A stretch of DNA of 64,000 nt, taken from NCBI RefSeq assembly GCF_000189555.1, contig NC_017276.1. The stretch is one strand, 5' to 3'. Source of the DNA: Saccharolobus islandicus REY15A. GTDB taxonomy: Archaea > Thermoproteota > Thermoprotei_A > Sulfolobales > Sulfolobaceae. The position numbers and the translations under genes are program-made. The notes below the pieces were generated by a model. It searched no databases, was not told where the DNA came from, and saw only the letters and a list, made by a program, of their open reading frames with translations. This document shows positions 41,889-62,685 of the stretch, piece after piece; the stretch's first letter is position 1; every line of letters starts with the position of its first letter.

Positions 41889-42083
41889 ATGGGTACCATA
41901 AAATTCATCTTCGGTAAACCAGTTGATGAACCTTTTGATAGGGAAAACGAGATAAGGCAACTAGTTGAAATGGCAAATAGAAGGCAACCAACTGCAATAA
42001 TCGGTGTGAGAAGGATAGGAAAGACTTCGGTAATATTGAAAGGTTTAAAAATGGTTGAGACTCCAAAAGTCTATCTCTCTGCA
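41889..42083 (+). pseudogene. Archaeal AAA+ ATPase N-terminal fragment
   Basis: FDRENE and GVRRIGKT Walker A; cut by an IS at 42084. Confidence 0.85.
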
Positions 42084-43093
42084 GTGCTTTGTGGGCTACT
42101 TCAATTTATTTCATAAACATGATATGATACACTGAGAATTTTTCAGCAAGTAATATTTATTTCAACGTTATTCGCAAGCTCACACCCTAATACCTGTAGC
42201 TTTACCGACTACAGAATTAGCCAAGTGGATCATCCACGCGTAAGCCCAGAACTTGGCCTCAACCACTTGTCCTAAAAAACTTGTAGCCCTAACAGATTCC
42301 CCAAAAGTTAACAGCAGAGAATAAGGACTCAATTCTCCACCTAACACCATAACCCTCCAACGATTATAACCCAATTTCTTGAACTCCCTTACAGCCTTCC
42401 TCCTAGCAGGATGACCATACCTAGTAGAAGCGTTCTTCCTAGGTGGGACACAACCTCAACCCCAGTCTTGTAAACCTCGTTGGCATCATAAGCCTTATCC
42501 CCATAAAACCTTCTTTCCCTTATCTTGTAAATCCTTAACCGTCTTAACTGCAGTCTCAACCTAGTTGCTAGTTACCTCAGCGTTTATCACGTTGAACTCG
42601 TCCTTATCCATTATTATCTCGATCTTGAGGAATTTTGAGTCTCTGGTTTTACCCCATTTTGCTATTGTCCTCCTTTGTTTGTGCTTATTCCCGTTGCGTC
42701 TGCTTCAAGTTGGTCATTTGCCTCTGGGAAGGTTATGTTCATGTTTCTTACTCTTTCCCATATTGTTGAGTAGTCTAGGCTTGTTGGGATGATTTTCAGT
42801 CTTTCTAATGCTCTCGATACTCCTTCTATGGCCCTATAAGGTAGGAAGATGTGGAGGAATGCTAGGAATTCGTTGAACTCCTTTGGTGCCTTGTAGGTTT
42901 TCTTGGCATTCCTATTCTCCTCTGCTAGTTGACTAGTGTTCGAAGACGTAGAAGGGGAACATTAGGGTATATCTCGTTATGACGTTCTCGTCGTATTTGC
43001 TCCAATCCCTCTTGTACTTACTCTTTCCCATGGGTAATACTTGACATAATTAGTTATAAATTTTTGTATAATGTGAAATAGCTCACAAAGCAC
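42084..43093 (-). mobile_element. IS5-family ISC1058-like element, transposase decayed
   Basis: ~20-bp TIRs GTGCTTTGTG(G/A)GCTA(C/T)TTCA. Transposase starts MGKSKYKRDWSKYDENV at 43032 and has frameshifts. No TSD. Confidence 0.8.
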
Positions 43094-43505
43094 CTTGGAC
43101 TTTCTTTCTTAAAATATACCATGAGCCTAATGCCTTAGCCCCTAAATTGCCTTCAGCATCTCTAAACTCTATCTCAACAACTATTACTGTACTGCCTTTC
43201 CTAAGAACCTTACCCTCAACTCTAAACGGCCCCTTATACATAGGCTCCAGAAAGTTAACCTTAAGTTCTTGTGTAACTTGATCTACACCATCATTAACAG
43301 TAAACGCTGCAAGACCTCCAGTGAAGTCAATCGCAGTCATTATTATTCCTCCGTGTAATACGTTGCCCCTTCTAGTTAATTCTTCCTTAAAAGGTATTTC
43401 AACTACTGCTCTACCTTGCTCTAGGAGAAGCACTTTAGCTCCTACATATCTGAAAACATGATCAGCATTTTTGAATATTTCCTCAATGATCTTAGGATCT
43501 TCCAT
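43083..43505 (-). CDS. PaaI-family thioesterase
   Basis: [11 protein letters not shown] hotdog-fold motif; likely start MEDPK. Confidence 0.9.
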
Positions 43506-43924
43506 ACTAATAAAGAAGGGAGAACGATTTAAATAATTTGCGGATAAGATTATTCTATAGCTAGAAGAGTGTACCATAACTACAGTAAAGACAATTCTTA
43601 CGTTATTGATTCTCTTTAACTTCCCGAGATACCGGGCAATCTTAATTTTTAAGATCTACATAAATACTAAAATAGGATTTTTATATTACATTTATTACCT
43701 TTTTAAATTATCTTACATTAACACAGAGTATCCATTGAACGTTATCACCAATATCTTACTATAGAAAATCTCGCTATTTAGTCTCAATAAGCCCTTAATG
43801 CGATTAGCCTTTAATGCTCATTAATCCTAGGCAGACATCTTCTAAAACCATAATACCGTTTCGGATTTAGCTGATTCATTCAAGCTCTCTAAGTCTTTCT
43901 GAACGTATTCAGAGTGTGGACACA

Positions 43925-43962
43925 ATGTCATTATTAAGCTACAAATTCTAGAATTAACCTTC
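43925..43962. repeat. Isolated IS1 (ISC796-like) end remnant
   Basis: ATGTCATTATTAAGCTACAAATTCTAGAATTAACCTTC matches the end of the element at 60873. Confidence 0.65.
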
Positions 43963-44060
43963 TTATATAAAACATTTTAGTCAGATCTTTGTAATACAGA
44001 TCTAACTGGGTAAGGCCGTTAACCTTCTTGGGCATAAAGCCCGAATAAGGGTAAGTATAT

Positions 44061-44275
44061 ATGGAGGCCCCAGTTGTGGGAATAGATTTATCAAAAGATA
44101 AATTAATTATGTATTTTCAAGGCAAACACTACGAGTTTCCTAATTATAGGCAAGGGTTTGAGGAGATAAGGAAGATCTTGCATAAGGGTTGTAAAATAGG
44201 TATTGAAAGTACCGGAGTTTACCACATTAACCTAGCCAAGTACTTGATGGGTGAGTATGATGTTAGGATAGTATT
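44061..44275 (+). pseudogene. IS110-family recombinase N-terminal fragment
   Basis: VGIDLSKD and IESTGVYH (DEDD N-half); homology is lost after about codon 71. Confidence 0.85.
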
Positions 44276-44307
44276 TATTGGAAAAGCGTTGAATTCGATA
44301 ATTCCTA

Positions 44308-44442
44308 TGAATACCTACCTTAATATTTGCTATTATTTTAAAATAGATAGTATCGATCAACAATTTAGATATAAAAATATTATGATCATAGACATAGTCC
44401 TTTAAAAACTATGTAACCCTAGGATTTTACGCAAAACGTTAC
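44308..44442. repeat. Degenerate ~135-bp dispersed repeat, copy 1
   Basis: Aligns with 50889-51022; shared core CCTTTAAAAAxTAxxTAACCCTAGGAxTTTACGCAAAA. Confidence 0.6.
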
Positions 44443-46451: not shown

Positions 46452-46712
46452 ATGAGTTGGAAATTAAAAGACCTTAAGGGGTTATCAGCTCCTACTGACG
46501 TTAAAATGTGTACAGTAGATGATGTAGTAAGACAATTAAAAGATAAATACAAGATAGATGTTCAGATCTTAACTAAAATAGCCAATGATGTTCTGGTTAA
46601 ACATCTTACAGAAAAGAAGATAACAATAGAAGATATAAAAAAGAATTATAGTAATGTTAAAGATATTGACAATATTATAGAGGATATCTTAAGATTGTCT
46701 GGCAAGTTGTAA
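46452..46712 (+). CDS. Small hypothetical protein
   Basis: 86-aa ORF with an upstream TTTTAA TATA-like element; no family recognised. Confidence 0.6.
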   Translation: MSWKLKDLKGLSAPTDVKMCTVDDVVRQLKDKYKIDVQILTKIANDVLVKHLTEKKITIEDIKKNYSNVKDIDNIIEDILRLSGKL

Positions 46713-47090
46713 TTTTTGGCCTATACTTTTTAGAATCTCCTCACTTTCTGGGAACCTTTTTTCTATATATCTAGAAAATACTAGCTCATCATTAACATAT
46801 ATATCTAGTATTCCCCTATCACCTTGAACTAGTTCAACATTGACCTCCTCAAAATAGGATAGAATATCTCTTGCCAGATTTAACGCCCTATCCATATATT
46901 TGCAAGGCCTGCAGTAAACGATCTTAACGTCAATTTTCTTATTCAGATCAGCTGGTGAGACGTATTTAGTTAGATTCTTCTTAAACTCATCTAGACATCC
47001 TTTAGAACAGAAGTAATAGGTTATACCCCTATAGTTTATCCTATAAGGCGTAGTGTTCTCAACTTCCATTTTACAAACGGGATCTTGCAT
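46689..47090 (-). CDS. YHS/TRASH metal-binding domain fused to an Rdx (SelT/SelW-like) domain
   Basis: DPVCKM...YYFCSKGC followed in frame by IVYCRPC...FSRYIEKRFP. Confidence 0.8.
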   Translation of the reverse strand: MQDPVCKMEVENTTPYRINYRGITYYFCSKGCLDEFKKNLTKYVSPADLNKKIDVKIVYCRPCKYMDRALNLARDILSYFEEVNVELVQGDRGILDIYVNDELVFSRYIEKRFPESEEILKSIGQKLQLARQS

Positions 47091-47434
47091 AAAATAAGGA
47101 AGTATCAGTAAATTATAAAACTTTCCCAAAATACTTTCAACTTCCTTAATGTACTTATGTTAATAATCAACTTATAATTTCAATATATGTGATTTGTGGA
47201 TTGCTTCAATTTTTATCAAAGTAACGCTAAACTTATTTTTAATCTAAGGCTTGATTTTTAATTTAATAAAATTTAACGAGCTTGACGCCTAAGAAAATCG
47301 AAGAATTCACAAAGCACAATATATAAACTAGTTTCCTATAAAACGGAATTAGAGTTAAGAAAGCGTAATTATAAGGAAAAATATAAACCATCTTGAATTT
47401 AAGGTTTATAATAATCCTCAACAAGTTTATTATT

Positions 47435-48658
<1,224 letters not shown>

Positions 48659-49335: not shown

Positions 49336-50301
49336 ATGAATAAGCTAATTCCCATATTAGTCGTGGTAATAATCATACTTGGTATAATTGCGTTTCTAGA
49401 ATTTGGCAAGTTCCAACAAAATACTAGTTTAACTAAAAGCACTAGTATTTACGCCTTGTTCCCTGGTCGTAATCACTCTTTCAATATAGTTGCGAACTAT
49501 TCCGGTAATTATGCAGATGCTTTAGTAATAGTGAACTCGTCTACAAATGCTACTCTGATGGCTTCACCCTTTTTATGGAATATAGGATATGCTTTAGGAA
49601 ACGTTAACATGACGTTTAATAATTATTTACACGTAGCGATAAATCTATCTCAAATAAACAAGATTTCCTTAAACGTGGTGGATGGTTATCCAGGTTTAAT
49701 GTACGGTCAAGAATTGTGGTGGCCATTCGAGTATAGGACAGCTCAACTTAAGTCCCTATCCTTGCCTATGATTGTTTCACAGTTACCAAACTTCTACTCA
49801 ATTCTTAATTACTCCGTTTACCTCATTAATGGAAGTATTGACGATTTCTCCTATGATATTTGGCTTTCCCAAAATCCCAACGTAACCTCTTTACAATATG
49901 GCGATTTTGAAGTGATGATTTGGATGTATTGGAGCGAAAACTTGTCCCATGTTCCATATTTCATATATGTCGGCAACATGACAATCCCAACACTTATAAA
50001 TGGTAAGATCGAGAACTTGAGTTGGGAAGTATACGTATTGCCTAGAACTGGTTCGGCCAACGGTTGGACTGGAGTTTACTTTTTGTCACCCTTAAAAGAA
50101 CGCGAAGCGGAATTTGGAGTGCCTATAGCTTATATATTGAAAAACATGGGCCAATTTATTGAGAACGCAGGGATGAATGTATATAATCCAAATACGTACT
50201 ATTTAGATGCCATACAAGTTGGCATGGAGTTCAGTGATAATCACGGTACTGCAATAATGGGTTACTATTTGTATTCATGGCGAATATGGCTACTCTCCTA
50301 A
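49336..50301 (+). CDS. GH12 endo-1,4-beta-glucanase, membrane-anchored
   Basis: N-terminal anchor, GYP, YDIW, FEVMIW (nucleophile Glu) and GMEF (acid/base Glu). Confidence 0.9.
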
Positions 50302-52866: not shown

Positions 52867-52944
52867 TTGCAAAATTGTTAATTATAAGAAGATAAGAGTT
52901 TAATTTATGCAATGAATCAATGGATAATCTTGTAATTTTTACAA
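52867..52944. promoter_or_regulatory. Three Ss-LrpB-type boxes (autoregulation)
   Basis: TTGCAAAATTGTTAA (52867), GTTTAATTTATGCAA (52898) and TTGTAATTTTTACAA (52930), spaced 31 and 32 bp. Confidence 0.85.
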
Positions 52945-52978: not shown

Positions 52979-53446
52979 TTGATGGGAGTTAATATAATGA
53001 GACTTGACGATACTGATGAAAAAATACTTGAGATCTTACGCTATAATGCTAAAAAGAGTTTAAAAGAGTTATCGGACGAACTGGGAATACCTATAAGTAC
53101 CGTGAGGTATAGGATAAAGAGACTGGAAGACGCTCAAATAATAAGAGGATATGTAGCCATAATAGACAGAGTGAACCTAGGTTTAAATGTTTCATTAGTC
53201 ATGGAAATAGAGACAGTGCCTTATTCCATAAAAAAGGTAGCTCAAGAACTAGGTGAAATACCAGAAGTGGTGAGAATATATGGTTTAGATAATGGGCCTA
53301 GATTACACGTACATATGATCTTTAAAGATGATGCAAGGGCACATCAATTTATAGCCAATAAATTGTACAATATTAAGGGAATTAAGACTGTTTCCATTTC
53401 AAGAATAATTGAGAGATATAAGATAGACCCCTCGGTATTGCTATGA
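52979..53446 (+). CDS. lrpB: Lrp/AsnC regulator, Ss-LrpB ortholog
   Basis: LDDTDEKIL...STVRYRIKRLE HTH plus RAM domain, adjacent to the por-like operon and permeases. Confidence 0.9.
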   Translation: MMGVNIMRLDDTDEKILEILRYNAKKSLKELSDELGIPISTVRYRIKRLEDAQIIRGYVAIIDRVNLGLNVSLVMEIETVPYSIKKVAQELGEIPEVVRIYGLDNGPRLHVHMIFKDDARAHQFIANKLYNIKGIKTVSISRIIERYKIDPSVLL

Positions 53447-53496: not shown

Positions 53497-54513
53497 TTAT
53501 TTGTCACTTATCTTTACATTTAACGACTTTATTGGCATTACTCCGGGGATTTCCCATTCTTCATACATCTCGTCAACCATCCTTTGTATGTGCTCGATGT
53601 CTTCCTCTGTAAAGTGTGAGAATCTTCCTTGCTTTTCTAAGTACTCTTTTACCGGTTTTCTCTTCATTCTACCCTCCACTATACTCTTTGTGGGCTCATT
53701 GTACGCTATCTCCCCATCAGTATACTCATATAGTGGCCACAGTCCAGTTTCAGCTGCCAATACTCCCAGTTCATGAGAGAACCTTGGATCGTAATCCCAT
53801 CCCTTGGGACATGGATCTAAGGAATGAATGAAAGTTGGCCCACCTATTGCTAATGCCTTCTTGATCTTGTTTATTGAATCCAGTGGATAGGCGGGGGTCA
53901 TGGTAGCGGCGTATCTAATGTTCCTATGCCCTGCTATTATCATTGGAACTACACTCTTCTTCCACCTCTTCTTCATTATCCTTCTTTGCTTACCTGGCCT
54001 ACTGAATGAGGTCTGTGCTCCATAAGGTGTCATGCTAGTCTCTTGAATATCAGTGTTAGCTGAAGATTCATTATCATAAAGTACTATGAGTAAGTTATAG
54101 TCATACGTCATTGCGTTTGAAACTCCAGACAAACCCATATCTGCACATCCTAGATCTCCACAGAAGGCTATCACGTTTATAGGTTCTTGCTTTATTTTTC
54201 CTTTCCTCATTAATGCTCTCAATGCTGCGGCTGTACCTAATGCAGCCGCACCAGATCCTCCCAATTGCGTGTGAACCCATGGTACTATCCATGACGTGCT
54301 ATAATATGTAGTATTTGCCACATACATGCATCCAGTAGCTCCTATAACTATGGTCCTTTGTCCGGCAGCTTTAGCCAAAAACCTCATGACTAGTGCTGAC
54401 TCACATCCTTGACAAGTCCTATGGCCAGATGTATAGAACTCTTCCAGTGGTGTATCTTTTATTGTCTTAATAATTGACTTATACACCTTTTCTTCCATTT
54501 CCTTTTCAACCAT
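53497..54513 (-). CDS. 2-oxoacid:ferredoxin oxidoreductase beta subunit (oxalate oxidoreductase-like)
   Basis: GHRTCQGC, TGCMYVANT, GD...DN TPP motif and PCPKGW. Confidence 0.9.
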   Translation of the reverse strand: MVEKEMEEKVYKSIIKTIKDTPLEEFYTSGHRTCQGCESALVMRFLAKAAGQRTIVIGATGCMYVANTTYYSTSWIVPWVHTQLGGSGAAALGTAAALRALMRKGKIKQEPINVIAFCGDLGCADMGLSGVSNAMTYDYNLLIVLYDNESSANTDIQETSMTPYGAQTSFSRPGKQRRIMKKRWKKSVVPMIIAGHRNIRYAATMTPAYPLDSINKIKKALAIGGPTFIHSLDPCPKGWDYDPRFSHELGVLAAETGLWPLYEYTDGEIAYNEPTKSIVEGRMKRKPVKEYLEKQGRFSHFTEEDIEHIQRMVDEMYEEWEIPGVMPIKSLNVKISDK

Positions 54514-54531
54514 GTGGGATCACCTTCAATT

Positions 54532-55779
54532 TTACCAAGGGTCTCCTCTGACCCCAACCCAATAAACGGGTTTCGTTATGGGAGTATCCCTATGCTCGTA
54601 ACCTATCTTAATTATTTTTTCCACGTCCTGGATAGTTATTTCCCTTCCACCCAATCCTCCTATGAAACTCATAACTCTGGGCCTCTGATCTAGATCGTAT
54701 AGTGAAGATCTAATTTCATGATAGATGACCCCTCCTCTGTTTGGCGATCCCATTGAGTAATCCCTATCAACAACACACACCACCCTAGAATTTGCTAAAT
54801 ACTTAATGACATCTTGTGTTGGGAATGGCCTGAACCACCTTATCCTTAACATTCCCACCTTATAGCCTTGTCTTCTCATACTCTTTATCGCGACTTTCAT
54901 CGGTTTAGAAACTGTTCCCATTCCAATTAACACCACCTCAGCGTCATCAACCATATACGGCTCTACAAATGGGTTTTCCGGCATTTGTAACTCATTGGTT
55001 GAACCTGGATATCTCCCGAACACCTTTTTAAATTCCTCATATGCTTCAACTATTACACCCCTAGCCCTTTCAATAGCCTCTTCATGTTGTCTCCTTATCT
55101 CCATAACCCAATCTTCGTTAACTTGAGGAGCTACAGTAATTGGATTATCTGGGTGAACCAAATACTTGCCTCTATTATATGGCGGTAAGAAGTTCTTAAC
55201 CAGTTCCTTAGGAGGTAGTCTCACTATTTGTTCTGAGTGCGTCAAAAATCCACCATCCATAGATATGCCTAAGGGTAGTAACACCCTTTGATCTTCAGCT
55301 ACCCTATAAGCTATTAACGTAGTATCGAAAGCCTCTTGAGCAGTGTCCACCCATACCAATAACCAACCCAGATCCCTTACCATTAACGCATCATTGTGTT
55401 CAACTCCATAAGCTCCAGGATCATCTAGAGCCCTATTCCCTATTATTGCGACTACTGGAGCACGATCTGTTGCCGTAACCACTATTGCCTCCATTCCGTA
55501 AAGCCACCCAACTCCACTACTTCCCACTAAAGTCCTTGCTCCAGCTAAAGAGGCATGCTTCACAGTTTCAAACTGTCCGTGTTCTCCTTCAGCAACTATG
55601 AACTCTGCATCCAATTCACCATCTGCTATTAATTTAGAGATCGTGTCCATAACTTCAGTATATGGTCTAATTGGATAAGCTGCAACTACGTCCACATCTG
55701 CATACATTGCAGCATGAGCAACTGCTTGTGTTCCGTTCATTAATACCTCTTTTTCTACTAATTTTTTGACCTCTGTCAT
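54532..55779 (-). CDS. 2-oxoacid:ferredoxin oxidoreductase alpha subunit (oxalate oxidoreductase-like)
   Basis: YPIRPYT (55657-55677), EGEH, NRALDDPG and GLGG motifs. Confidence 0.9.
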   Translation of the reverse strand: MTEVKKLVEKEVLMNGTQAVAHAAMYADVDVVAAYPIRPYTEVMDTISKLIADGELDAEFIVAEGEHGQFETVKHASLAGARTLVGSSGVGWLYGMEAIVVTATDRAPVVAIIGNRALDDPGAYGVEHNDALMVRDLGWLLVWVDTAQEAFDTTLIAYRVAEDQRVLLPLGISMDGGFLTHSEQIVRLPPKELVKNFLPPYNRGKYLVHPDNPITVAPQVNEDWVMEIRRQHEEAIERARGVIVEAYEEFKKVFGRYPGSTNELQMPENPFVEPYMVDDAEVVLIGMGTVSKPMKVAIKSMRRQGYKVGMLRIRWFRPFPTQDVIKYLANSRVVCVVDRDYSMGSPNRGGVIYHEIRSSLYDLDQRPRVMSFIGGLGGREITIQDVEKIIKIGYEHRDTPITKPVYWVGVRGDPW

Positions 55780-56867
55780 CTCCCTAACCCCGGAACGTAG
55801 ACCCTTTCTTTCCTAGCTTGCCTTACATTCTTTAACCATTCCTTGTACTTTGCCTTATTCTCCTTCCACATCTCATATGGTCTTCTGTAATCTGTGAACA
55901 TCGATTCATCTACCATTACTATGCAATCCTTAACAGGACATACATCAGCGCATATGCCACAGCCTACACAGTAATCATATGCTATATCGTAATATCCATC
56001 TGGCGTCTCATCAAAACATTCATCCGGACAGTATATCCAACATAACTTACATTTGATACAAGTGTCGAAATCTACTGTAGGTCTCTCAAATTTCGTAGTC
56101 CCCCTCTTAAAGAGTTCGTTTCTCTTTCCTCTAGGAACTGCGGGAATTACTGTACCTTCCAACATCTCCTGCCATGTTAGTAGTCTAGGCGGATTATATA
56201 CGAAATCTATTCCCTCACCTTTCATTACAATTCTGTAATCTACTGACGAATATGCTTCCTTGACCGCAGATATTCTCTTGTTAGCATCTTGTTTTTTACT
56301 TACATATTTAATTAAATGATCTAAATCAATTATATCTGGTCTTAACTTTGCTAATCCTCCCCAGACTTTCTCCATTGTTAAATCATCCTTAAATGCCCAT
56401 AGTCCCGAAAATGATGGTTCAGTATTTATTACTCCTAGAGTCCAATTGAAGTCCTTTTTAGGTATCATTTTCGACAATTCGTTAATTCTCTTTGTAGAGG
56501 TTACTAGCATTGTCCCGTTACTCTTTAGTTTAAGGTTGATTGGTTGTACCCCTTGCCATGCCCACGATTCTACACCCTTTAATAGGGTATCGTCTAGTAC
56601 AATAATGGTATCTACTAGATCAGGCTCTACTCTTGTTGAGTACCCTATAAGGTCTTCCTCATTCACTCCATTTCCTATTCCAACATAGTATTTCGCCGGT
56701 ACTCCGTTCCTTTCTGGAGAATCTCCATATCTTCCGAAAGATAGGGCTGGTCTCCCCATTTCCCTTGCAGTATACACGATTCCTTCTGCAATATATTTTG
56801 CCAATCTTTTCTGGAATATACCCCTATATACTATCTCTACATACTTCACTTCATCTTTTACTCCCAT
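55776..56867 (-). CDS. 2-oxoacid:ferredoxin oxidoreductase gamma-delta fusion subunit
   Basis: Gamma-like N-domain plus CIKCKLCWIYCP and CVGCGICADVCP 2x[4Fe-4S] motifs. Confidence 0.9.
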   Translation of the reverse strand: MGVKDEVKYVEIVYRGIFQKRLAKYIAEGIVYTAREMGRPALSFGRYGDSPERNGVPAKYYVGIGNGVNEEDLIGYSTRVEPDLVDTIIVLDDTLLKGVESWAWQGVQPINLKLKSNGTMLVTSTKRINELSKMIPKKDFNWTLGVINTEPSFSGLWAFKDDLTMEKVWGGLAKLRPDIIDLDHLIKYVSKKQDANKRISAVKEAYSSVDYRIVMKGEGIDFVYNPPRLLTWQEMLEGTVIPAVPRGKRNELFKRGTTKFERPTVDFDTCIKCKLCWIYCPDECFDETPDGYYDIAYDYCVGCGICADVCPVKDCIVMVDESMFTDYRRPYEMWKENKAKYKEWLKNVRQARKERVYVPGLGR

Positions 56868-56904
56868 ATGAGAATATTTCGTAATCTGTTATATATAGAT
56901 TAAT

Positions 56905-56982
56905 TTGTAACTATATTAATTTACGTATACAAGGTTTTGTAACATAGTAGGGTGTTTCTAGAATCTTTTGCAAAATATGCAA
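56905..56982. promoter_or_regulatory. Three LrpB-type boxes upstream of the OFOR operon
   Basis: TTGTAACTATATTAA (56905), TTGTAACATAGTAGG (56937) and TTGCAAAATATGCAA (56968), spaced 32 and 31 bp. Confidence 0.75.
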
Positions 56983-57076
56983 GATATAGGGAAGGAAGTT
57001 TGACTTGACTATTAAGAATTTTTTTAAAAAATAAAAAAGAATAGAAATTACAATAAAAAATGTTTATCATAAGAAA

Positions 57077-58366
57077 TTATTTGGTTTTAGATTCTATGCT
57101 ATCTCTCTGACTCTCAGCACCTGCAATCTGTGCAGTAGGCATTTTTGGTGGTCTTAGGGTTAAGGCTAGGATTGAAGATACTATGGCCATTAAACCAGTT
57201 ATGACCAATGTCTCCTTTATGCCATATGAGGTGAATAGTACTGATGCACCATAACCGGCAAATATACCCGCTAATGCCTTTGCAGTATAGGTTAAGCCGT
57301 AATTAGCTCCAGAGTGCTTAGGCCCATAATAATCACCTACTAGCGGAGGGAATAAAGAGAATAGCGGACCCCATGTGAATGCTGTAAGGAAAATCAAGGC
57401 AAGGTATAATGGTGCAATCTTTGGTATGAACGCTACTGAAAGCATGGAGATTCCACTAATTCCGAAAGACAGCGTCATAGTATATGGTCTTCCTAAGTAG
57501 TCAGATACCGTACCCATTACAAATCTTCCTAAACCATTAGCGAAGGGAAATAGGAACACCGCAATTACAGCAGCTATACTAAATCCCAGTGATCTACCGT
57601 AAGGTATTAGATGTCCAATTATGGATAGACCAGATCCTGCAATAAGGAAAAATGCAATATAAATTACCCACCATTGCCATGTTTTAACCATCTGTGAAAC
57701 GCTAAAATCGCTTTTACTCCTCTTTATCATCTTACGTTTTCTCTCATACTCCTCGGCATTAAAGCCTTTAGGTAACCATTGAGGAGGAGGATAGGCAAAG
57801 AAGTATGCCAATAGAGTTATAACTACTAGTTGTGTAATTCCCAAATAAACTAATGCAGTGCGGTAACTAATTGAAGTGATAATATATTGTATTAAAGGGG
57901 ATAATGCAAATGATCCACCACCGAAGCCTATTTCTATAATTCCAGTTGCTAGACCTCTTTTATCTGGGAACCATCTAACTGCAGTGCTTATTGCGGTGCC
58001 GTATATTATACCAACTCCTATACTCCCGAAGCCATAGGTAAGATATAGTAGCGGCAAGGAATTAGCAAAGGCAGAGCTAACATATCCAATACCAGTAATT
58101 ATCCCACCTAACATAGAAATTAGTCTAGGACCATACCTATCCGCAATCCTACCTGCAACAAACATTGATAGAGCTTGGACAATAATATATATTGTGAATG
58201 TAAGCCCTAGTGCTGCTGACCCCGGAGCTACGTTAAATACTTTACCTAATGGTACTGTGTATAATGTCCATGAGTATTCATACACACTAACAAGTGCCAT
58301 GGAAATAGTTGCTGCTACTACTAAAAACCATCTAAACCATCCTTTCTCAAACCACTTATTGCTCAT
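57077..58366 (-). CDS. MFS oxalate/formate antiporter (OxlT/OFA family)-like
   Basis: YEYSWT, ADRYGPR, WFPDKRGLATG, FANGLGR and YTAKALAG motifs. Confidence 0.8.
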   Translation of the reverse strand: MSNKWFEKGWFRWFLVVAATISMALVSVYEYSWTLYTVPLGKVFNVAPGSAALGLTFTIYIIVQALSMFVAGRIADRYGPRLISMLGGIITGIGYVSSAFANSLPLLYLTYGFGSIGVGIIYGTAISTAVRWFPDKRGLATGIIEIGFGGGSFALSPLIQYIITSISYRTALVYLGITQLVVITLLAYFFAYPPPQWLPKGFNAEEYERKRKMIKRSKSDFSVSQMVKTWQWWVIYIAFFLIAGSGLSIIGHLIPYGRSLGFSIAAVIAVFLFPFANGLGRFVMGTVSDYLGRPYTMTLSFGISGISMLSVAFIPKIAPLYLALIFLTAFTWGPLFSLFPPLVGDYYGPKHSGANYGLTYTAKALAGIFAGYGASVLFTSYGIKETLVITGLMAIVSSILALTLRPPKMPTAQIAGAESQRDSIESKTK

Positions 58367-58458
58367 TATTCATTCTATACGTAAAAAATGGTTTTAACTT
58401 TTGTTTCTAAAATTAGCCTATATTTATTAGAAATATAACTAACTGTCATCAAATTTTC

Positions 58459-58473
58459 TTGCATAAAATGCGA
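58459..58473. promoter_or_regulatory. LrpB-type box upstream of the OxlT-like permease
   Basis: TTGCATAAAATGCGA. Confidence 0.6.
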
Positions 58474-58776
58474 GTAAGTACGTTAAAAATATAATTCTTT
58501 GGCTTAGATAGTAGCACTATATTTGGAAATTAAATTTAAAAACTTGTTATTATTAATGTACATAGTTCAGTTGATCCATGCCATAAATAACAAAATTTTC
58601 CTGCATAAACGGAATCCTATGAATAATATTTAAGTATTCCCTAAAAGCTAGTGGCAATTTTACCTTTTACTTCTTATATAAAAATCTGTGAGGAGTGATT
58701 GAGTTAAACAATTCTAGATATGTAAAAATATTAGGAGTTAACTTAATAGAAAAAAGGAAGGTAGTTTATATAGATA

Positions 58777-60369
58777 CTAATGCACAAATAGAGATGGAGC
58801 TAAGAATGCGTATAGTACTCCTATCAGTATTAGATATATCAATATACCTATAGCCCAAGGCAGATTTTTCCTAATTACTATTCCCTCTTTTCGAACATAT
58901 TTTGTTGTAGATACTCCTGCACTCGCAGTCTGCGGAGCTACTGGTTTAGCTAATTCTGCACCGACAGAGTTTAACGCTGGTGGTAATCCTACGGGTAAGC
59001 CAGCTAAACGTGCAGTTGTGGCTTGGAAAGCTCCAAAAAGGGCGTTAGTTGAAGTATTGCTTCCAGACAGTGCGCATCCAATCCACCCAAATAATGGTGA
59101 GACTATTATAAACGCTACTCCTAGATCACTAGTTTTCCAAGCTAATGAGTAAGCCATTCCACTGAAATTGAATACATATGCAAGTCCAACTACAAAAACA
59201 CCAGTTAGTATCCCTCCCCAGTATTGATGAAAAGACCTCTTTATAGCCTGTCCCATAACTTTAGGCGAGGCCCTCAAAACTAGAGAAATGATTATCCATG
59301 ATACTAAAATTGACGTACCTGCTACGAAAGGATTAAAGGCAAAACTCACCGCCACGTTTTTATGGAGAAGTGAAGAGTAAGCTGACTGGGATAAGGTAAC
59401 TAATGAAAACTTAGTTAGAGGGGACCAAGGACCGGTCCATAGAGTCACTACTATTATCAATACTATGAAAGCTGATAATGCCTCAATAACGTCTCTTTTA
59501 GAGTATTTCTTACTATCCCCCCCATTGGGCTGAATACTTCTTAAGCTCAGTATTCTTTTAGGCCTCCACACTCTTAAGAATAAAAGTAATATTACAAAAG
59601 ATATTAAAGACCCTGTAATGTCAGGTAAGTAAGGACCAATAAAGCTCGCTACCGGATATTGACCTAAGATGTAGGATAATGAGCCTAGTATAGCTATTGG
59701 CCATGCTTCCTTTATCCCCCTCCATTTGTCAACTAGATATAATAATATCCAAGGTGGTAATAGAGCTAAAATCGCCACAACCTTTGCCACTGAAGATGAT
59801 ACAAACAGTAAAGGTAATCCGGTAACTGATGCTAATATAATGATCGGTGTTCCTAATGCACCATAAGATACCGGCGCGTTGTTAGCCAATGCAGAAACTT
59901 GAAGGGCTTTTAGATCATCAAAACCTAGATATATTAAGAGTGGAGCTATAAATGCCCAAGGATATCCAAATCCTACTAATCCTTCAAATAAGGCTCCTAA
60001 AGACCAGGCCAATACAATAGCTTGAACTCTAGCGTCATTAGTAGAGTTTCTTACGATCCAATCCCTAAACGCATCAAATTTCCCAGTTAGCACTAACGTG
60101 TTATAAATTGTTAATCCCCAGAATACTATCCAAGAAATTGCCCAAGTTCCTACTAACGCTCCTATAAGCCATGCATAGCTGACTTGTACTATGGGAGCTC
60201 CCCACACTAAGGTTGCAACTAAAATCGTTATTATTGAACCTATGAGCGTAGCTAACCATGCAGTTATCCTTAGTCCAGCCAACAATACGAGCAGTATAAT
60301 TATTGGCGTTAAAGATGCTAAAATAGTTAACCCTACATTACCAGTTGGGTTTAAGGGTTGTACATACAT
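58777..60369 (-). CDS. L-lactate/glycolate permease (LctP/GlcA family)
   Basis: FEGLVGFG, NNAPVSYGALGTP and SGSNTSTNALFG motifs. Confidence 0.9.
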   Translation of the reverse strand: MYVQPLNPTGNVGLTILASLTPIIILLVLLAGLRITAWLATLIGSIITILVATLVWGAPIVQVSYAWLIGALVGTWAISWIVFWGLTIYNTLVLTGKFDAFRDWIVRNSTNDARVQAIVLAWSLGALFEGLVGFGYPWAFIAPLLIYLGFDDLKALQVSALANNAPVSYGALGTPIIILASVTGLPLLFVSSSVAKVVAILALLPPWILLYLVDKWRGIKEAWPIAILGSLSYILGQYPVASFIGPYLPDITGSLISFVILLLFLRVWRPKRILSLRSIQPNGGDSKKYSKRDVIEALSAFIVLIIVVTLWTGPWSPLTKFSLVTLSQSAYSSLLHKNVAVSFAFNPFVAGTSILVSWIIISLVLRASPKVMGQAIKRSFHQYWGGILTGVFVVGLAYVFNFSGMAYSLAWKTSDLGVAFIIVSPLFGWIGCALSGSNTSTNALFGAFQATTARLAGLPVGLPPALNSVGAELAKPVAPQTASAGVSTTKYVRKEGIVIRKNLPWAIGILIYLILIGVLYAFLAPSLFVH

Positions 60370-60731
60370 ACTTCCTTCCCTAATTGGAATATATCTCTAA
60401 CTTTATAAGCTTACTTTTGATAAATGGTTAAAAATTCTCAAAAATAATTACAAGATTTATTACATCTCATCATCCCTTCATGGAAAGATTTAAAAAAGAC
60501 CATGAAAGTTGACTAATAACGCTTAAATATTAACTTAATTATACTTTAGGTTCTTAACAATAAACCCTTTTGAAATAATAACATCGAAGGTAATTGTGAG
60601 TTTCAAACATATTGATGTTGCTCTTTCGACTATAAGAAAATATAAAAACAATACTTTTCCTCTTTGAGGCAAAGTCAGTATGGTGATTTCTTTTGTATGT
60701 AGATGAAGAATCAGAAAATAGAGTTAGGAGA

Positions 60732-60872: not shown

Positions 60873-61652
60873 ATAGTGTCGTCATTAAGCTACAAATTCT
60901 GGGATTAACCTTCTCTCCCATAAGACTAGGGCTATGGAGTACATCATGGTGCGAATGCTCCTATTTACTGCCTTCGTTGCTCCCTTGAATCTAATTAGCC
61001 TATCCCTTAATGAGGAATGAAAGGACTCGTTCGGGTTAACTGGCGAGACAACCGTGTGGTCTTTCAACCAGAAGTACAAGTTATAATCATCACTCACCCA
61101 TCTACCCTCGTCAAGCAAATACTTTTTGACCTCAAGGAAAGTACTCTCATCCCCATCCCCCACAGAGTAAATGAGGTAAACTCCCAGCTTCGTGTAAACG
61201 TAGCAAGTGAAAACCTATATAGAACGCCCACTTGTAAAAAGCCCTAGTATTCTTGTACAAGTAAGTCCACATCTCATCGACAACCTTAGCAACAACACCA
61301 CCCTTGACCAGCTCCTTAGCCTTACCCCACAACTCAACTTCTGCCCACCATACCGCTTAATCCAAGTGAAGACAGTACCCAAGGGGACATTCAAAACCCT
61401 AGAAATGGCTCTCATACTCATACCATTAGCATACAACCTCAAAGCCTCCTCCCTCAACTTCTTGGAATGATGATGGTAAGTAGCATCACCCAAGAAGTAT
61501 CTACCGCAATCCCTACACACTGCCTACCCAACCACACTTAACAACATGATGAGAACCACAAGAGGGACAAGAAACGTCTTGCCTAACTACAGCCTTCCTA
61601 CCCATAAGTAATACTCGTTATACAAATATAAATAGCTTAACGACGACACTAT
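60873..61652 (-). mobile_element. IS1-family ISC796-like element
   Basis: TIRs ATAGTGTCGTC(A/G)TTAAGCTA; about 780 bp. Confidence 0.85.
60885..61605 (-). pseudogene. IS1-family transposase with several frameshifts
   Basis: MGRKAVVRQDVSCPSCG, CRDCG, HTH, VDEMWT, SDDY and NESFHS segments lie in different frames. Confidence 0.85.
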
Positions 61653-61801
61653 CGACGCACTCGGACTAAGGTTTCCTGCTTTATCTCCTCAGGCTGATTT
61701 TTATCAACTTTTTCTTAGTTATATTTGATTTTATTCTGATATTATTTATACCTATGAATTTTCTAAATATCTTAAAAAGAGAAAGATTATCTTAGACCAG
61801 A

Positions 61802-62010
61802 TTAAATTCCATAATCTCTAATATAAAAAATATATGGTTTAAGACCAGTATTAACATCAATCCAAAGCGTCTCTTCATATTCTATAAATCCTATTGCCTT
61901 ATATACGTTAACTGCGGGTAAGTTATCGTGTCTAACTAAAAGGGAAGCTATCATTCCCCTTCTGACTATATCACTGGTTAATGTTGATACTACACTTTTG
62001 GCTAAACCCT
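61802..62010 (-). pseudogene. GNAT acetyltransferase C-terminal fragment
   Basis: Reverse complement GLAKSVVSTL...LLVRHDNLPAVNVYKAIGF. Confidence 0.7.
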
Positions 62011-62685
62011 ACTGTTGTTGTAGCATTTATCTTTATAATAATTGTAATTCTAATTCTATTCATAATAAAGTCTATTGTGCCACTAACCAGGGAAAAACCT
62101 ATAACTACTACTTCTCATATTCCATTTAAGGAGTATTCTAAATTGATGAGAGAAGATAGAAGTGGATTAATCTTGCCCTTGCTGTTAGCTGTGAACAGGT
62201 TTATTTTTGGAACAAGTTTTTTGTATATTCCACTCTATTTTACAGAGATAATAAAGGGAAGTCTACTGGAGTTGGGAATAATGCTTAGTACCGAGACTAT
62301 AGCCATAAGTTTAGCCTCATCTCTATCAAAGTTCATTTCAGACAGATTGGGTAACGTAACAACGTTAGCAATGACAAGAATTCTAGCCGCTATAACGTAT
62401 GCCTTACTTTACTTTGTAAAATCTCCCGTGATCTTTATATTAATAAACTGGGTTGGAACATTATTTATAGCTATGGATAACGTGCCAGAGGTCAGCGTAA
62501 TCTCTAAGATGAAAACAGCTAATTTATCCATGTCGTTAATAGATTCTGTATCTACATTACTATCAATATCTTCTCCAATAATTGCTCTTTATATTTGGGT
62601 AAACATATCCCCAGCTACCATATTCTTACTCTCCCTTTTAGTAATAATCCCATCAATATTAATGTTCAAATACAAAGTTGATTAG
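62011..62685 (+). pseudogene. MFS transporter C-terminal half
   Basis: About 7 TM segments with an ISDRLG motif; the N-terminal half is absent. Confidence 0.7.

Follow-up and report, generated by a model that had tools for sequence, protein, structure and literature searches.

What does the enzyme encoded by the archaeal genes known as porDAB oxidise? The question is raised by nucleotides 53497-60369 of a 64-kb stretch of Saccharolobus islandicus REY15A (NC_017276.1), called the window below. In this region, the genes for a three-subunit enzyme (gamma-delta, alpha and beta) are preceded by genes for two carboxylate permeases, one belonging to the OFA family of the major facilitator superfamily (MFS) and the other to the LctP family, and are flanked by a divergent gene for an Lrp-type regulator (Table 1). 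In S. solfataricus, such a locus has been described as the regulon of Ss-LrpB, and its authors call the substrates of porDAB and of the permeases unclear and speculate on lactate oxidation (PMC4046817). A first-pass annotation of the window proposed a module that imports oxalate or a related C2 acid and oxidises it to CO2 with reduction of ferredoxin. Judged from its sequence, the enzyme belongs to the oxalate oxidoreductase (OOR) lineage, which is marked by an xPIRP motif, as an OOR-like variant in a sister subclade of the Moorella group. We are confident that it is not a pyruvate:ferredoxin oxidoreductase (PFOR) and, on balance, we think that the module imports and oxidises oxalate rather than pyruvate.

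The enzyme and its lineage

In PFOR-type enzymes, the Thr of a YPITP motif binds the carboxylate of pyruvate, and mutation of any residue of this motif in a Sulfolobus 2-oxoacid:ferredoxin oxidoreductase (OFOR) abolishes or strongly reduces activity (PMC5020499). The alpha subunit of the window, which carries the Pfam domains POR_N and PFOR_II, reads YPIRPYT at this point (amino acids 35-41, nt 55657-55677), and its Arg38 aligns with Arg31-alpha of the Moorella thermoacetica enzyme (MtOOR; EC 1.2.7.10). The MtOOR active-site residues are taken here as quoted in PMC5020499, according to which Arg31-alpha, within a unique YPIRP motif, binds oxalate, Arg109-alpha is the only pocket residue conserved with other OFORs, and Asp116-alpha is named, together with Arg31, as key to a bait-and-switch mechanism. 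Arg116 of the window alpha aligns with Arg109 and is invariant in the alpha alignment. Furthermore, the alignment with MtOOR (about 50% identity) has no gaps around the active site, and MtOOR is the best match of alpha in the PDB (5c4i_A, 312 bits, as against 216 bits for 9bt4_B, the PFOR of M. acetivorans, MaPFOR).

The broad sample of alpha subunits came from a search of 1.8 billion representative proteins. At E<=1e-20, alpha has 6218 relatives, the closest being those of Sulfolobus sp. (91-92% identity), S. acidocaldarius SUSAZ (87%) and Metallosphaera (83%); the best 120 all carry YPIRP, and in their sources all are named PFOR or something generic. In a maximum-likelihood (ML) tree of 122 rows, all xPIRP alphas fall on one side of a branch with an SH-aLRT value of 99. 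A 48-row ML tree from a careful search likewise sets them, as a clade supported at 100/99, apart from the YPITP enzymes. Because all 120 of the closest homologues carry the Arg, and because the Arg marks one well-supported clade, its presence in this motif does not look like a chance substitution. Clustering of alpha with the CoA-dependent PFORs likewise fails as an alternative, since the clade that is separated at 100/99 contains both MtOOR and the window; alpha groups with MtOOR rather than with PFOR, VOR or KGOR, as the first-pass annotation had expected of it. Within the 48-row tree, the xPIRP clade splits into a Moorella subclade (100/100), several members of which have been named 'oxalate oxidoreductase' by NCBI or the JGI, and a sister subclade (100/96) annotated as PFOR or generically. 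The latter holds the window and comprises Sulfolobales, Vulcanisaeta, Thaumarchaeota, Acidobacteria, Rokubacteria and Dehalococcoidia, with the Sulfolobales paired with Vulcanisaeta (100/98).

The beta subunit (Pfam TPP_enzyme_C) tells a similar story. Its proximal-cluster Cys residues lie in GHRTCQGC (amino acids 30-37, nt 54403-54426), in TGCMYVANTTYY (amino acids 60-71, nt 54301-54336), which includes TGCMYVANT, and in PCPKGW (nt 53797-53814), and its thiamine pyrophosphate (TPP)-binding motif is GDLGCADMG...DNESSANTDIQ (nt 54043-54159). The pocket motif TGCMYVANT is the same in MtOOR, whereas MaPFOR has TGCLEVMTT and the PFOR known as DaPFOR has TGCSSIWG. The Val of this motif aligns with Ile843 of DaPFOR, and beta Asn153 with Asn996, both of which are pocket residues (PMC5020499). 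MtOOR is again the best PDB match (5c4i_C, 271 bits; MaPFOR 9bt4_C, 200 bits), and the NCBIfam OOR beta model scores 341 bits against 283 for PorB.

The third subunit joins a diverged domain III (approximately amino acids 1-250) to a ferredoxin domain V with two CxxCxxCxxxCP motifs for 2x[4Fe-4S] (amino acids 270-281, nt 56025-56060; amino acids 300-311, nt 55935-55970). Its best PDB match, over the full length, is 5c4i_B, while PFOR delta subunits cover the ferredoxin part only, and amino acids 7-325 align with positions 12-315 of the 316 in the NCBIfam OOR delta profile NF045790 (89.9 bits). An AlphaFold2 model (pLDDT 83) has MtOOR delta as its best Foldseek match (E 4.8e-22), followed, for the N-terminal part, by PorC gamma subunits (TM 0.70-0.79). 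Pfam finds only 4Fe-4S dicluster domains in gamma-delta, and the POR domain PF01558 was undetected, even at E<=1, in this subunit and in an acidobacterial homologue. In PFORs, CoA is bound by domain III (PMC13768988); the divergence of this domain here is therefore compatible with, although no proof of, a loss of CoA use. Domains III and V thus lie on one chain in the window, which also has all the Cys motifs for three [4Fe-4S] clusters and the TPP motif in beta. The gamma-delta fusion was also considered as a hallmark of OOR in its own right and was dropped, the genes being split in three of six Moorella-subclade loci.

Thus, MtOOR (PDB 5c4i, 5exd and 5exe; NCBIfam NF045790-92) is the closest known system and heads the PDB matches of each of the three subunits, sharing with the window YPIRPY, Arg109-alpha, TGCMYVANT, the cluster Cys residues of beta, the fusion of domains III and V and membership of the xPIRP clade. 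At the level of the operon it also shares a carboxylate transporter after beta and a carboxylate-type regulator before the operon. What the first-pass annotation said of MtOOR is borne out, in that the chains of 5c4i are alpha, delta and beta and Arg31-alpha binds oxalate (PMC5020499), and every motif that it quoted from the window (YPIRPYT, GHRTC.GC, TGCMYVANT.Y and the gamma-delta fusion with 2x[4Fe-4S]) was located in the translations. Further off are the four-subunit archaeal PFOR (for example, that of M. acetivorans, PDB 9bt4) and VOR. PFORs have YPITP and separate gamma and delta chains; their domain III is recognisable and CoA-binding, and they lie across the 100/99 branch. The two-subunit OFOR/PFOR enzymes of the Sulfolobales (StOFOR1/2, PDB 5b46; SSO2815) occur in the same organisms and also pass electrons to ferredoxin in an aerobe. 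However, they are alpha-beta enzymes with an N-terminal domain III, no delta domain, a single cluster, YPITP and a broad use of 2-oxoacids, and they are only very distantly related to the window alpha (E 4e-5).

Transport, regulation and gene neighbourhoods

The window MFS scores 503.2 bits on the OFA-family model TIGR00890 (cut-off 374.85). Its best PDB match (8hpj, 214 bits, 35% identity) is OxlT, the oxalate:formate antiporter of Oxalobacter formigenes (PDB 8hpj and 8hpk), as against 174 bits for SfMCT, the L-lactate/H+ symporter of Syntrophobacter fumaroxidans (PDB 6g9x). In OxlT, Arg272 (TM8) and Lys355 (TM11) bind the two carboxylates of oxalate (PMC10070484, the source of the list of binding residues used here). 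They correspond in the window MFS to Arg281 (nt 57524-57538 block) and Lys363 (nt 57278-57289 block), and this pair is invariant in 18 OFOR-linked MFS proteins. The window MFS also keeps OxlT residues Tyr35, Thr38, Tyr124, Asn268 and Trp324 and the aromatics at 150, 328 and 352, and has Ile for Gln63. In contrast, SfMCT, which comes from the same MFS subfamily neighbourhood, shares the Arg (Arg280) but has Cys in place of the Lys found in OxlT (Lys355) and in the window MFS; other binding positions are occupied by Leu, Cys and Phe.

The window MFS is 34% identical over its full length to the MFS that follows the OOR operon of Clostridium. Across a 13-site pattern, the two differ solely in having Glu34/Gln66 (window) and Gln34/Glu66 (Clostridium); the OOR-linked MFS proteins keep Gln34 with Glu at 66, and OxlT has Gln at both. 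OxlT is an exchanger, and oxalate/formate antiport is unlikely for the window MFS because the OOR pathway makes no formate. It is a conjecture, and a speculative one, that the Glu in the window MFS marks proton-coupled uptake instead.

The lactate idea deserves attention at this point. According to it, the enzyme would be a CoA-dependent PFOR fed with lactate through the two permeases, as the published speculation (PMC4046817) and the PFOR name in public annotation would have it. The window MFS does pass the SfMCT L-lactate model NF049980, if only just (325 bits, cut-off 320), the second permease belongs to the LctP family, and the archaeal PorA model is nearly level with the OOR model for alpha. 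Nevertheless, we consider this reading highly improbable. The pyruvate-binding Thr of YPITP, a motif whose mutation cripples the Sulfolobus enzyme (PMC5020499), is an Arg here, a branch with 100/99 support parts the clade from every YPITP enzyme, the window subunits stay below all PFOR and PorB cut-offs (PorB, 283 against 405), and the CoA-binding domain III is beyond detection by Pfam. The locus has no lactate dehydrogenase gene in its list of open reading frames (ORFs), and the PFOR characterised from S. solfataricus, SSO2815, is a different, alpha-beta enzyme (PMC13768988). As for the transporter, the SfMCT cut-off does not discriminate and SfMCT lacks the Lys that the window MFS has kept. 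MtOOR is, moreover, suicide-inactivated by pyruvate according to the title of Pierce et al. (2017). The present analyses therefore lend no support to the published 'pyruvate ferredoxin oxidoreductase' name or to the lactate idea for the Ss-LrpB regulon.

The SfMCT match was itself rejected as support for lactate, because an acidobacterial MFS (locus L064, 12327-13730) that scores 447 bits on the OxlT model passes the same cut-off; an OOR-linked MFS (L085, 9346-10635) falls just below it with 306 bits. Quite apart from this locus, the cut-off of the SfMCT model is a naming hazard for OFA proteins.

The second permease matches Pfam Lactate_perm (357 bits) and TIGR00795 (355 bits, cut-off 341) but scores far below the more specific equivalogs LldP (258/918) and GlcA (249/1121). 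What ties it to oxalate is analogy at the level of the family, together with the co-regulation already published, and it may or may not carry the same substrate as its neighbour.

Regulation ties these genes together. The published 15-bp Ss-LrpB box consensus, TTGYAWWWWWTRCAA, was scanned over the whole window, in which exact boxes occur twice (0.03 expected), both times in promoters: that of the regulator gene and that of the enzyme operon, where the box sits some 100 bp ahead of the gamma-delta start codon. Three boxes before the regulator gene, with 3, 2 and 0 mismatches and 31-32 bp apart, are consistent with the three cooperative Ss-LrpB sites published for this position (PMC4046817). The first-pass annotation had recognised the Ss-LrpB regulon, porDAB plus permeases; gene order, box consensus and box positions all agree with the regulon described from S. 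solfataricus (porDAB, Sso2127, Sso2126 and Sso2131; PMC4046817), and the ORFs, their order on one strand and the OFA and LctP genes upstream of the enzyme are as that annotation described them. It had also given LrpB boxes to both permeases. This holds for the MFS gene, with a one-mismatch box, and not for the LctP gene, before which our scan found no convincing box and a best site (60570-60584) with 3 mismatches; weak Ss-LrpB binding before the LctP gene has been reported in S. solfataricus (PMC4046817).

Gene neighbourhoods are the strongest functional evidence for the assignment. We compared six Moorella-subclade loci, four of them with the NCBI OOR name, and 80 window-subclade loci listed from a GTDB genome scan, with the contexts of Sulfolobales taken separately. 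Clusters of neighbouring genes were used only where confirmed by tblastn or family scans, as the ORF caller produces antisense artefacts in high-GC loci. The layout in the Moorella subclade is a GntR/FCD regulator, an AAA ATPase, gamma/delta (fused or split), alpha, beta and a transporter. The last is an LctP-family permease directly after beta in Moorella and an Ignavibacteriales metagenome-assembled genome (MAG; two of six), an MFS protein in Clostridium, Thermovenabulum and an Actinomycetota MAG (three of six), and an Nramp-like protein in Caldinitratiruptor (one of six). The Clostridium MFS passes the OxlT equivalog TIGR04259 (405 bits, cut-off 335), and those of Thermovenabulum and the Actinomycetota MAG match Pfam MFS_1 and have an OxlT-like binding-site pattern. 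Regulators in these loci are of the GntR and/or Lrp type, Clostridium also having an Lrp/AsnC regulator. The window thus holds both transporter families found in the Moorella-subclade operons, LctP and MFS, together with an Lrp-type regulator. The ATPase of the Moorella subclade is a CDC48-like double-AAA protein, encoded immediately before the OOR genes (L084, 3670-5871; L086, L087, L088 and L089) with a mutual identity of 53-67%.

The 80 loci come from Methylomirabilota/Rokubacteria, Dehalococcoidia, Acidobacteria, Thaumarchaeota (including Nitrosocosmicus), Thermoplasmata, Bathyarchaeota, Vulcanisaeta and others, and essentially all keep the order gamma-delta, alpha, beta. An OFA-type MFS follows beta in 21 of them, in several unrelated phyla. 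The acidobacterial MFS of L064, tested singly, exceeds the OxlT equivalog cut-off of 335 with the 447 bits given above, and all 18 OFOR-linked MFS proteins tested match the OxlT model TIGR04259. Among the loci listed, a tripartite tricarboxylate transporter follows beta in about 10 of Rokubacteria type, and 31 have a GntR/FadR-type regulator of the NanR, LldR, PdhR or GlcC kind. The archaeal layout is repeated in a thaumarchaeal locus (L007) with an Lrp-like regulator, an MFS 41% identical to that of the window and the enzyme, and the Lrp gene is still beside the operon in Metallosphaera and S. acidocaldarius SUSAZ. Thaumarchaeota carry the xPIRP operon in L007, L010 and L076, including a Nitrosocosmicus MAG, which hints at organic-acid use in ammonia-oxidising archaea.

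Oxalate weighed against other substrates

Oxalate import and oxidation is the most likely role for the module because subunit sequence, tree and gene neighbourhood all align with MtOOR. The proposal of the first-pass annotation therefore stands as regards the lineage of the enzyme and the families of its transporters, and is weakened by the position of the window in a sister subclade, by the loss of Asp116 and by the OOR cut-offs that are missed.

These and several further observations weigh against the oxalate reading. First, the three subunits stay below the NCBIfam OOR cut-offs (alpha 356.5/500, beta 341.3/590, delta 89.9/230), although the OOR models are nonetheless the top match for each, and for alpha the archaeal PorA model (349, cut-off 550) comes close to the OOR model. 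MtOOR delta gives a Pfam POR match of 52.6 bits, so that domain III of the window is the more diverged and the enzyme looks like a variant of OOR. Second, the active site differs. In the switch loop of alpha, RALDDPGAYG (amino acids 116-125, nt 55405-55434), Ala123 stands at MtOOR Asp116. This Asp is absent from 120/120 window-subclade sequences and present in 120/120 Moorella-subclade sequences, where the loop reads R[TA]LDPPGDFG throughout. As the window-subclade loop is RALDDPGA[FY]G in 119/120, with Val once at the Ala position, Asp116-alpha has been replaced by a small neutral residue throughout this subclade. Conversely, beta Asp155 stands where MtOOR has Gly145, two residues past the pocket Asn, a position occupied by Asp in 43/43 window-subclade betas and by Gly in 7/7 Moorella-subclade betas. 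The window also differs from MtOOR in an extra Asp in the alpha loop (Asp120, three residues before Ala123; Pro113 in MtOOR), which is general in the subclade, and in a Ser at Tyr141 of beta, found in Sulfolobales. Third, the CDC48-like AAA ATPase gene found ahead of five of six Moorella-subclade operons has no counterpart in the window or in any of the 83 window-subclade loci examined. Fourth, the window MFS misses the OxlT equivalog TIGR04259 (283.4 bits, cut-off 335), and the OxlT 'latch' Gln34, called strictly conserved in the OFA family, is Glu30. Nor is the LctP permease an orthologue of Moorella LctP; we claim no such orthology because the similarity is weak (33% identity over 130 amino acids only). 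Fifth, in the literature searched we found no oxalate phenotype, induction or activity in any member of the Sulfolobales, which differ from the anaerobic host of MtOOR in that the window comes from an aerobic thermoacidophilic archaeon. Finally, the neighbourhoods of the Dehalococcoidia operons point to glyoxylate or glycolate chemistry.

The last point leads to the chief alternative, namely that the same fold and electron path serve another small substrate, chiefly glyoxylate, which would be converted to CO2 and formate or formyl-CoA after import of glycolate or glycine (for instance, by the LctP-family permease) and their oxidation elsewhere; oxamate and mesoxalate could also be substrates. 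In Dehalococcoidia (L017, L026, L027, L042, L046, L070, L071 and L080), the operon lies among one or two FMN-dependent alpha-hydroxy-acid dehydrogenases (LldD or glycolate-oxidase-like), a ThiO-like FAD (glycine) oxidase, a double family-III CoA-transferase with frc-like domains, an acetolactate-synthase/Xsc-like TPP enzyme and TenA thiaminase II, a possible C2-acid island. In addition, the subclade-wide changes of Asp116-alpha to Ala and of beta Gly145 to Asp set the pocket apart from that of MtOOR, the residue of DaPFOR that aligns with Ala123 (Leu121) also lies in the pocket, and the carriers of the LctP family include the glycolate permease GlcA. However, two substrate-facing Arg residues suit a dianion, and glyoxylate has one carboxylate, while many lineages have, after the operon, an OxlT-equivalog transporter with the paired Arg and Lys. 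Glycolate oxidase-type enzymes also form oxalate from glyoxylate, and so the Dehalococcoidia neighbourhoods fit oxalate too. Because the two facing Arg residues and the transporters with paired Arg and Lys favour a dianion, we rank oxalate above glyoxylate, which seems rather unlikely to be the substrate.

If oxalate is the substrate, the locus would work as follows. It encodes a three-subunit TPP/[4Fe-4S] 2-oxoacid:ferredoxin oxidoreductase of the xPIRP lineage and two carboxylate uptake systems, with the enzyme operon and the transporters presumably under control of the Lrp-type activator Ss-LrpB. Oxalate would enter through the OFA-family MFS, its two carboxylates probably held by Arg281 and Lys363, with Glu30 close by as a residue that could permit H+ coupling in place of oxalate/formate antiport, and the LctP-family permease might be a second oxalate carrier. 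At the alpha/beta active site, Arg38 and Arg116 would grip both carboxylates during attack by TPP, and two CO2 would leave with no CoA involved. Cellular ferredoxin, perhaps the one that already serves the aerobic OFORs of Sulfolobales, would receive the two electrons by way of the proximal cluster of beta and then of both clusters in the delta domain. In MtOOR, a negative charge swings in after the first decarboxylation; here, beta Asp155 or alpha Asp120 could provide it. The two replacements, Ala for Asp116-alpha and Asp for beta Gly145, look coupled, as if the negative charge had been shifted from alpha to beta.

A further possibility concerns what the module is for. Intracellular organic acids are harmful to acidophiles, and the host is an acidophile; the enzyme could therefore destroy organic acids that have leaked in, with the transporters exporting or exchanging the anions. 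OxlT itself is an exchanger, and basal expression with weak LrpB activation has been reported under standard growth (PMC4046817). On the other hand, the same arrangement of operon and transporters in neutrophilic soil bacteria and in anaerobes fits catabolic uptake, and we regard detoxification or efflux as improbable. Being a matter of physiology rather than of enzyme identity, it overlaps with the oxalate module proposed here.

Tentatively, and with more doubt than confidence, we can go one step further and suggest that the window subclade as a whole may form a separate and very widespread class of ferredoxin oxidoreductases that act on oxalate (or glyoxylate) independently of CoA, with a relocated catalytic acid, no AAA partner and proton-coupled OFA transporters. 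They would work in aerobes, namely Sulfolobales, Thaumarchaeota that oxidise ammonia, Acidobacteria, Rokubacteria and Dehalococcoidia. If this were true, soils and hot springs would have an overlooked route of oxalate turnover, and the effector of Ss-LrpB, long sought, would be oxalate or a C2 acid close to it, which would also be the physiological signal.

The OOR enzyme family, the transporter families and the regulator family are already known. As far as we have checked, three points are new: that 'porDAB' of the Ss-LrpB regulon is placed in the OOR lineage, that this lineage has a large, mis-annotated and mostly aerobic sister subclade, and that a pair of residue changes in alpha and beta runs through this subclade. 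We found no earlier OOR assignment of the SSO2126-2130 locus in the literature searched, a search whose scope did not extend to the primary papers on OOR or to the phylogeny of Gibson 2016. To our knowledge, OOR has so far been characterised from one anaerobe only. If aerobic soil bacteria and archaea have a sister group of it, the known biology of oxalate degradation would become broader, and the paired swap would be a natural experiment on the bait-and-switch mechanism. Surveys of gut oxalate metabolism omit OOR for lack of information (PMC8062136). The reassignment also offers a concrete function for one of the best-studied archaeal Lrp regulons, whose authors describe the roles of its enzyme, permeases and effector as unclear (PMC4046817), and corrects the PFOR annotation on thousands of database entries.

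Features of the locus and its surroundings

The coordinates of the locus are collected in Table 1. The window has a G+C content of about 36%, and Rfam and tandem-repeat scans of it gave nothing relevant.

Table 1. Genes and putative Ss-LrpB boxes of the locus (window coordinates)
Feature	Position	Strand	Basis or location
Beta subunit, 338 aa, domain VI	53497-54513	-	ORF list
Alpha subunit, 415 aa, domains I-II	54532-55779	-	ORF list
Gamma-delta fusion subunit, 363 aa	55776-56867	-	ORF list
OFA-family MFS transporter, 429 aa	57077-58366	-	ORF list and TIGR00890
LctP-family permease, 530 aa	58777-60369	-	ORF list and TIGR00795
Lrp/AsnC-family regulator (Ss-LrpB-like), divergent from beta gene	52979-53446	+	Pfam HTH_24, HTH_AsnC-type, AsnC_trans_reg
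Exact Ss-LrpB box	52930-52944		Before regulator gene
Exact Ss-LrpB box, TTGCAAAATATGCAA	56968-56982		Upstream of gamma-delta gene
LrpB box, 1 mismatch, TTGCATAAAATGCGA	58459-58473		Upstream of MFS gene
Three LrpB boxes	52867-52944		Upstream of regulator gene

The locus borders a stretch disrupted by insertion sequences. Directly upstream of the LctP gene (60885-62685) lie a transposase-like HTH fragment (61215-61520) and a 234-amino-acid ORF (61981-62685) matching an MFS transporter over the C-terminal half of the latter only. On the far side of the regulator, a glycosyl hydrolase family 12 protein (49336-50301, +), endoglucanase-like and secreted or membrane-anchored, is encoded near the regulon and is apparently unrelated to it. 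A 421-amino-acid flavoprotein with Pyr_redox_2 and Reductase_C domains, of the ferredoxin/rubredoxin-reductase type, is encoded 4.8 kb from the beta gene (47393-48658, +); it could link reduced ferredoxin to NAD(P), although nothing ties it to the module. Adjoining its gene is one for a small protein (46689-47129, -) in which a metal-binding YHS domain is fused to an Rdx-family thioredoxin-like domain, an unusual pairing. Finally, positions 41889-44405 contain short ORFs only, among them an ATPase-like N-terminal fragment and a 114-amino-acid ORF whose translation resembles the N-terminus of a transposase, with no match in Pfam, and this stretch looks like one of gene decay.

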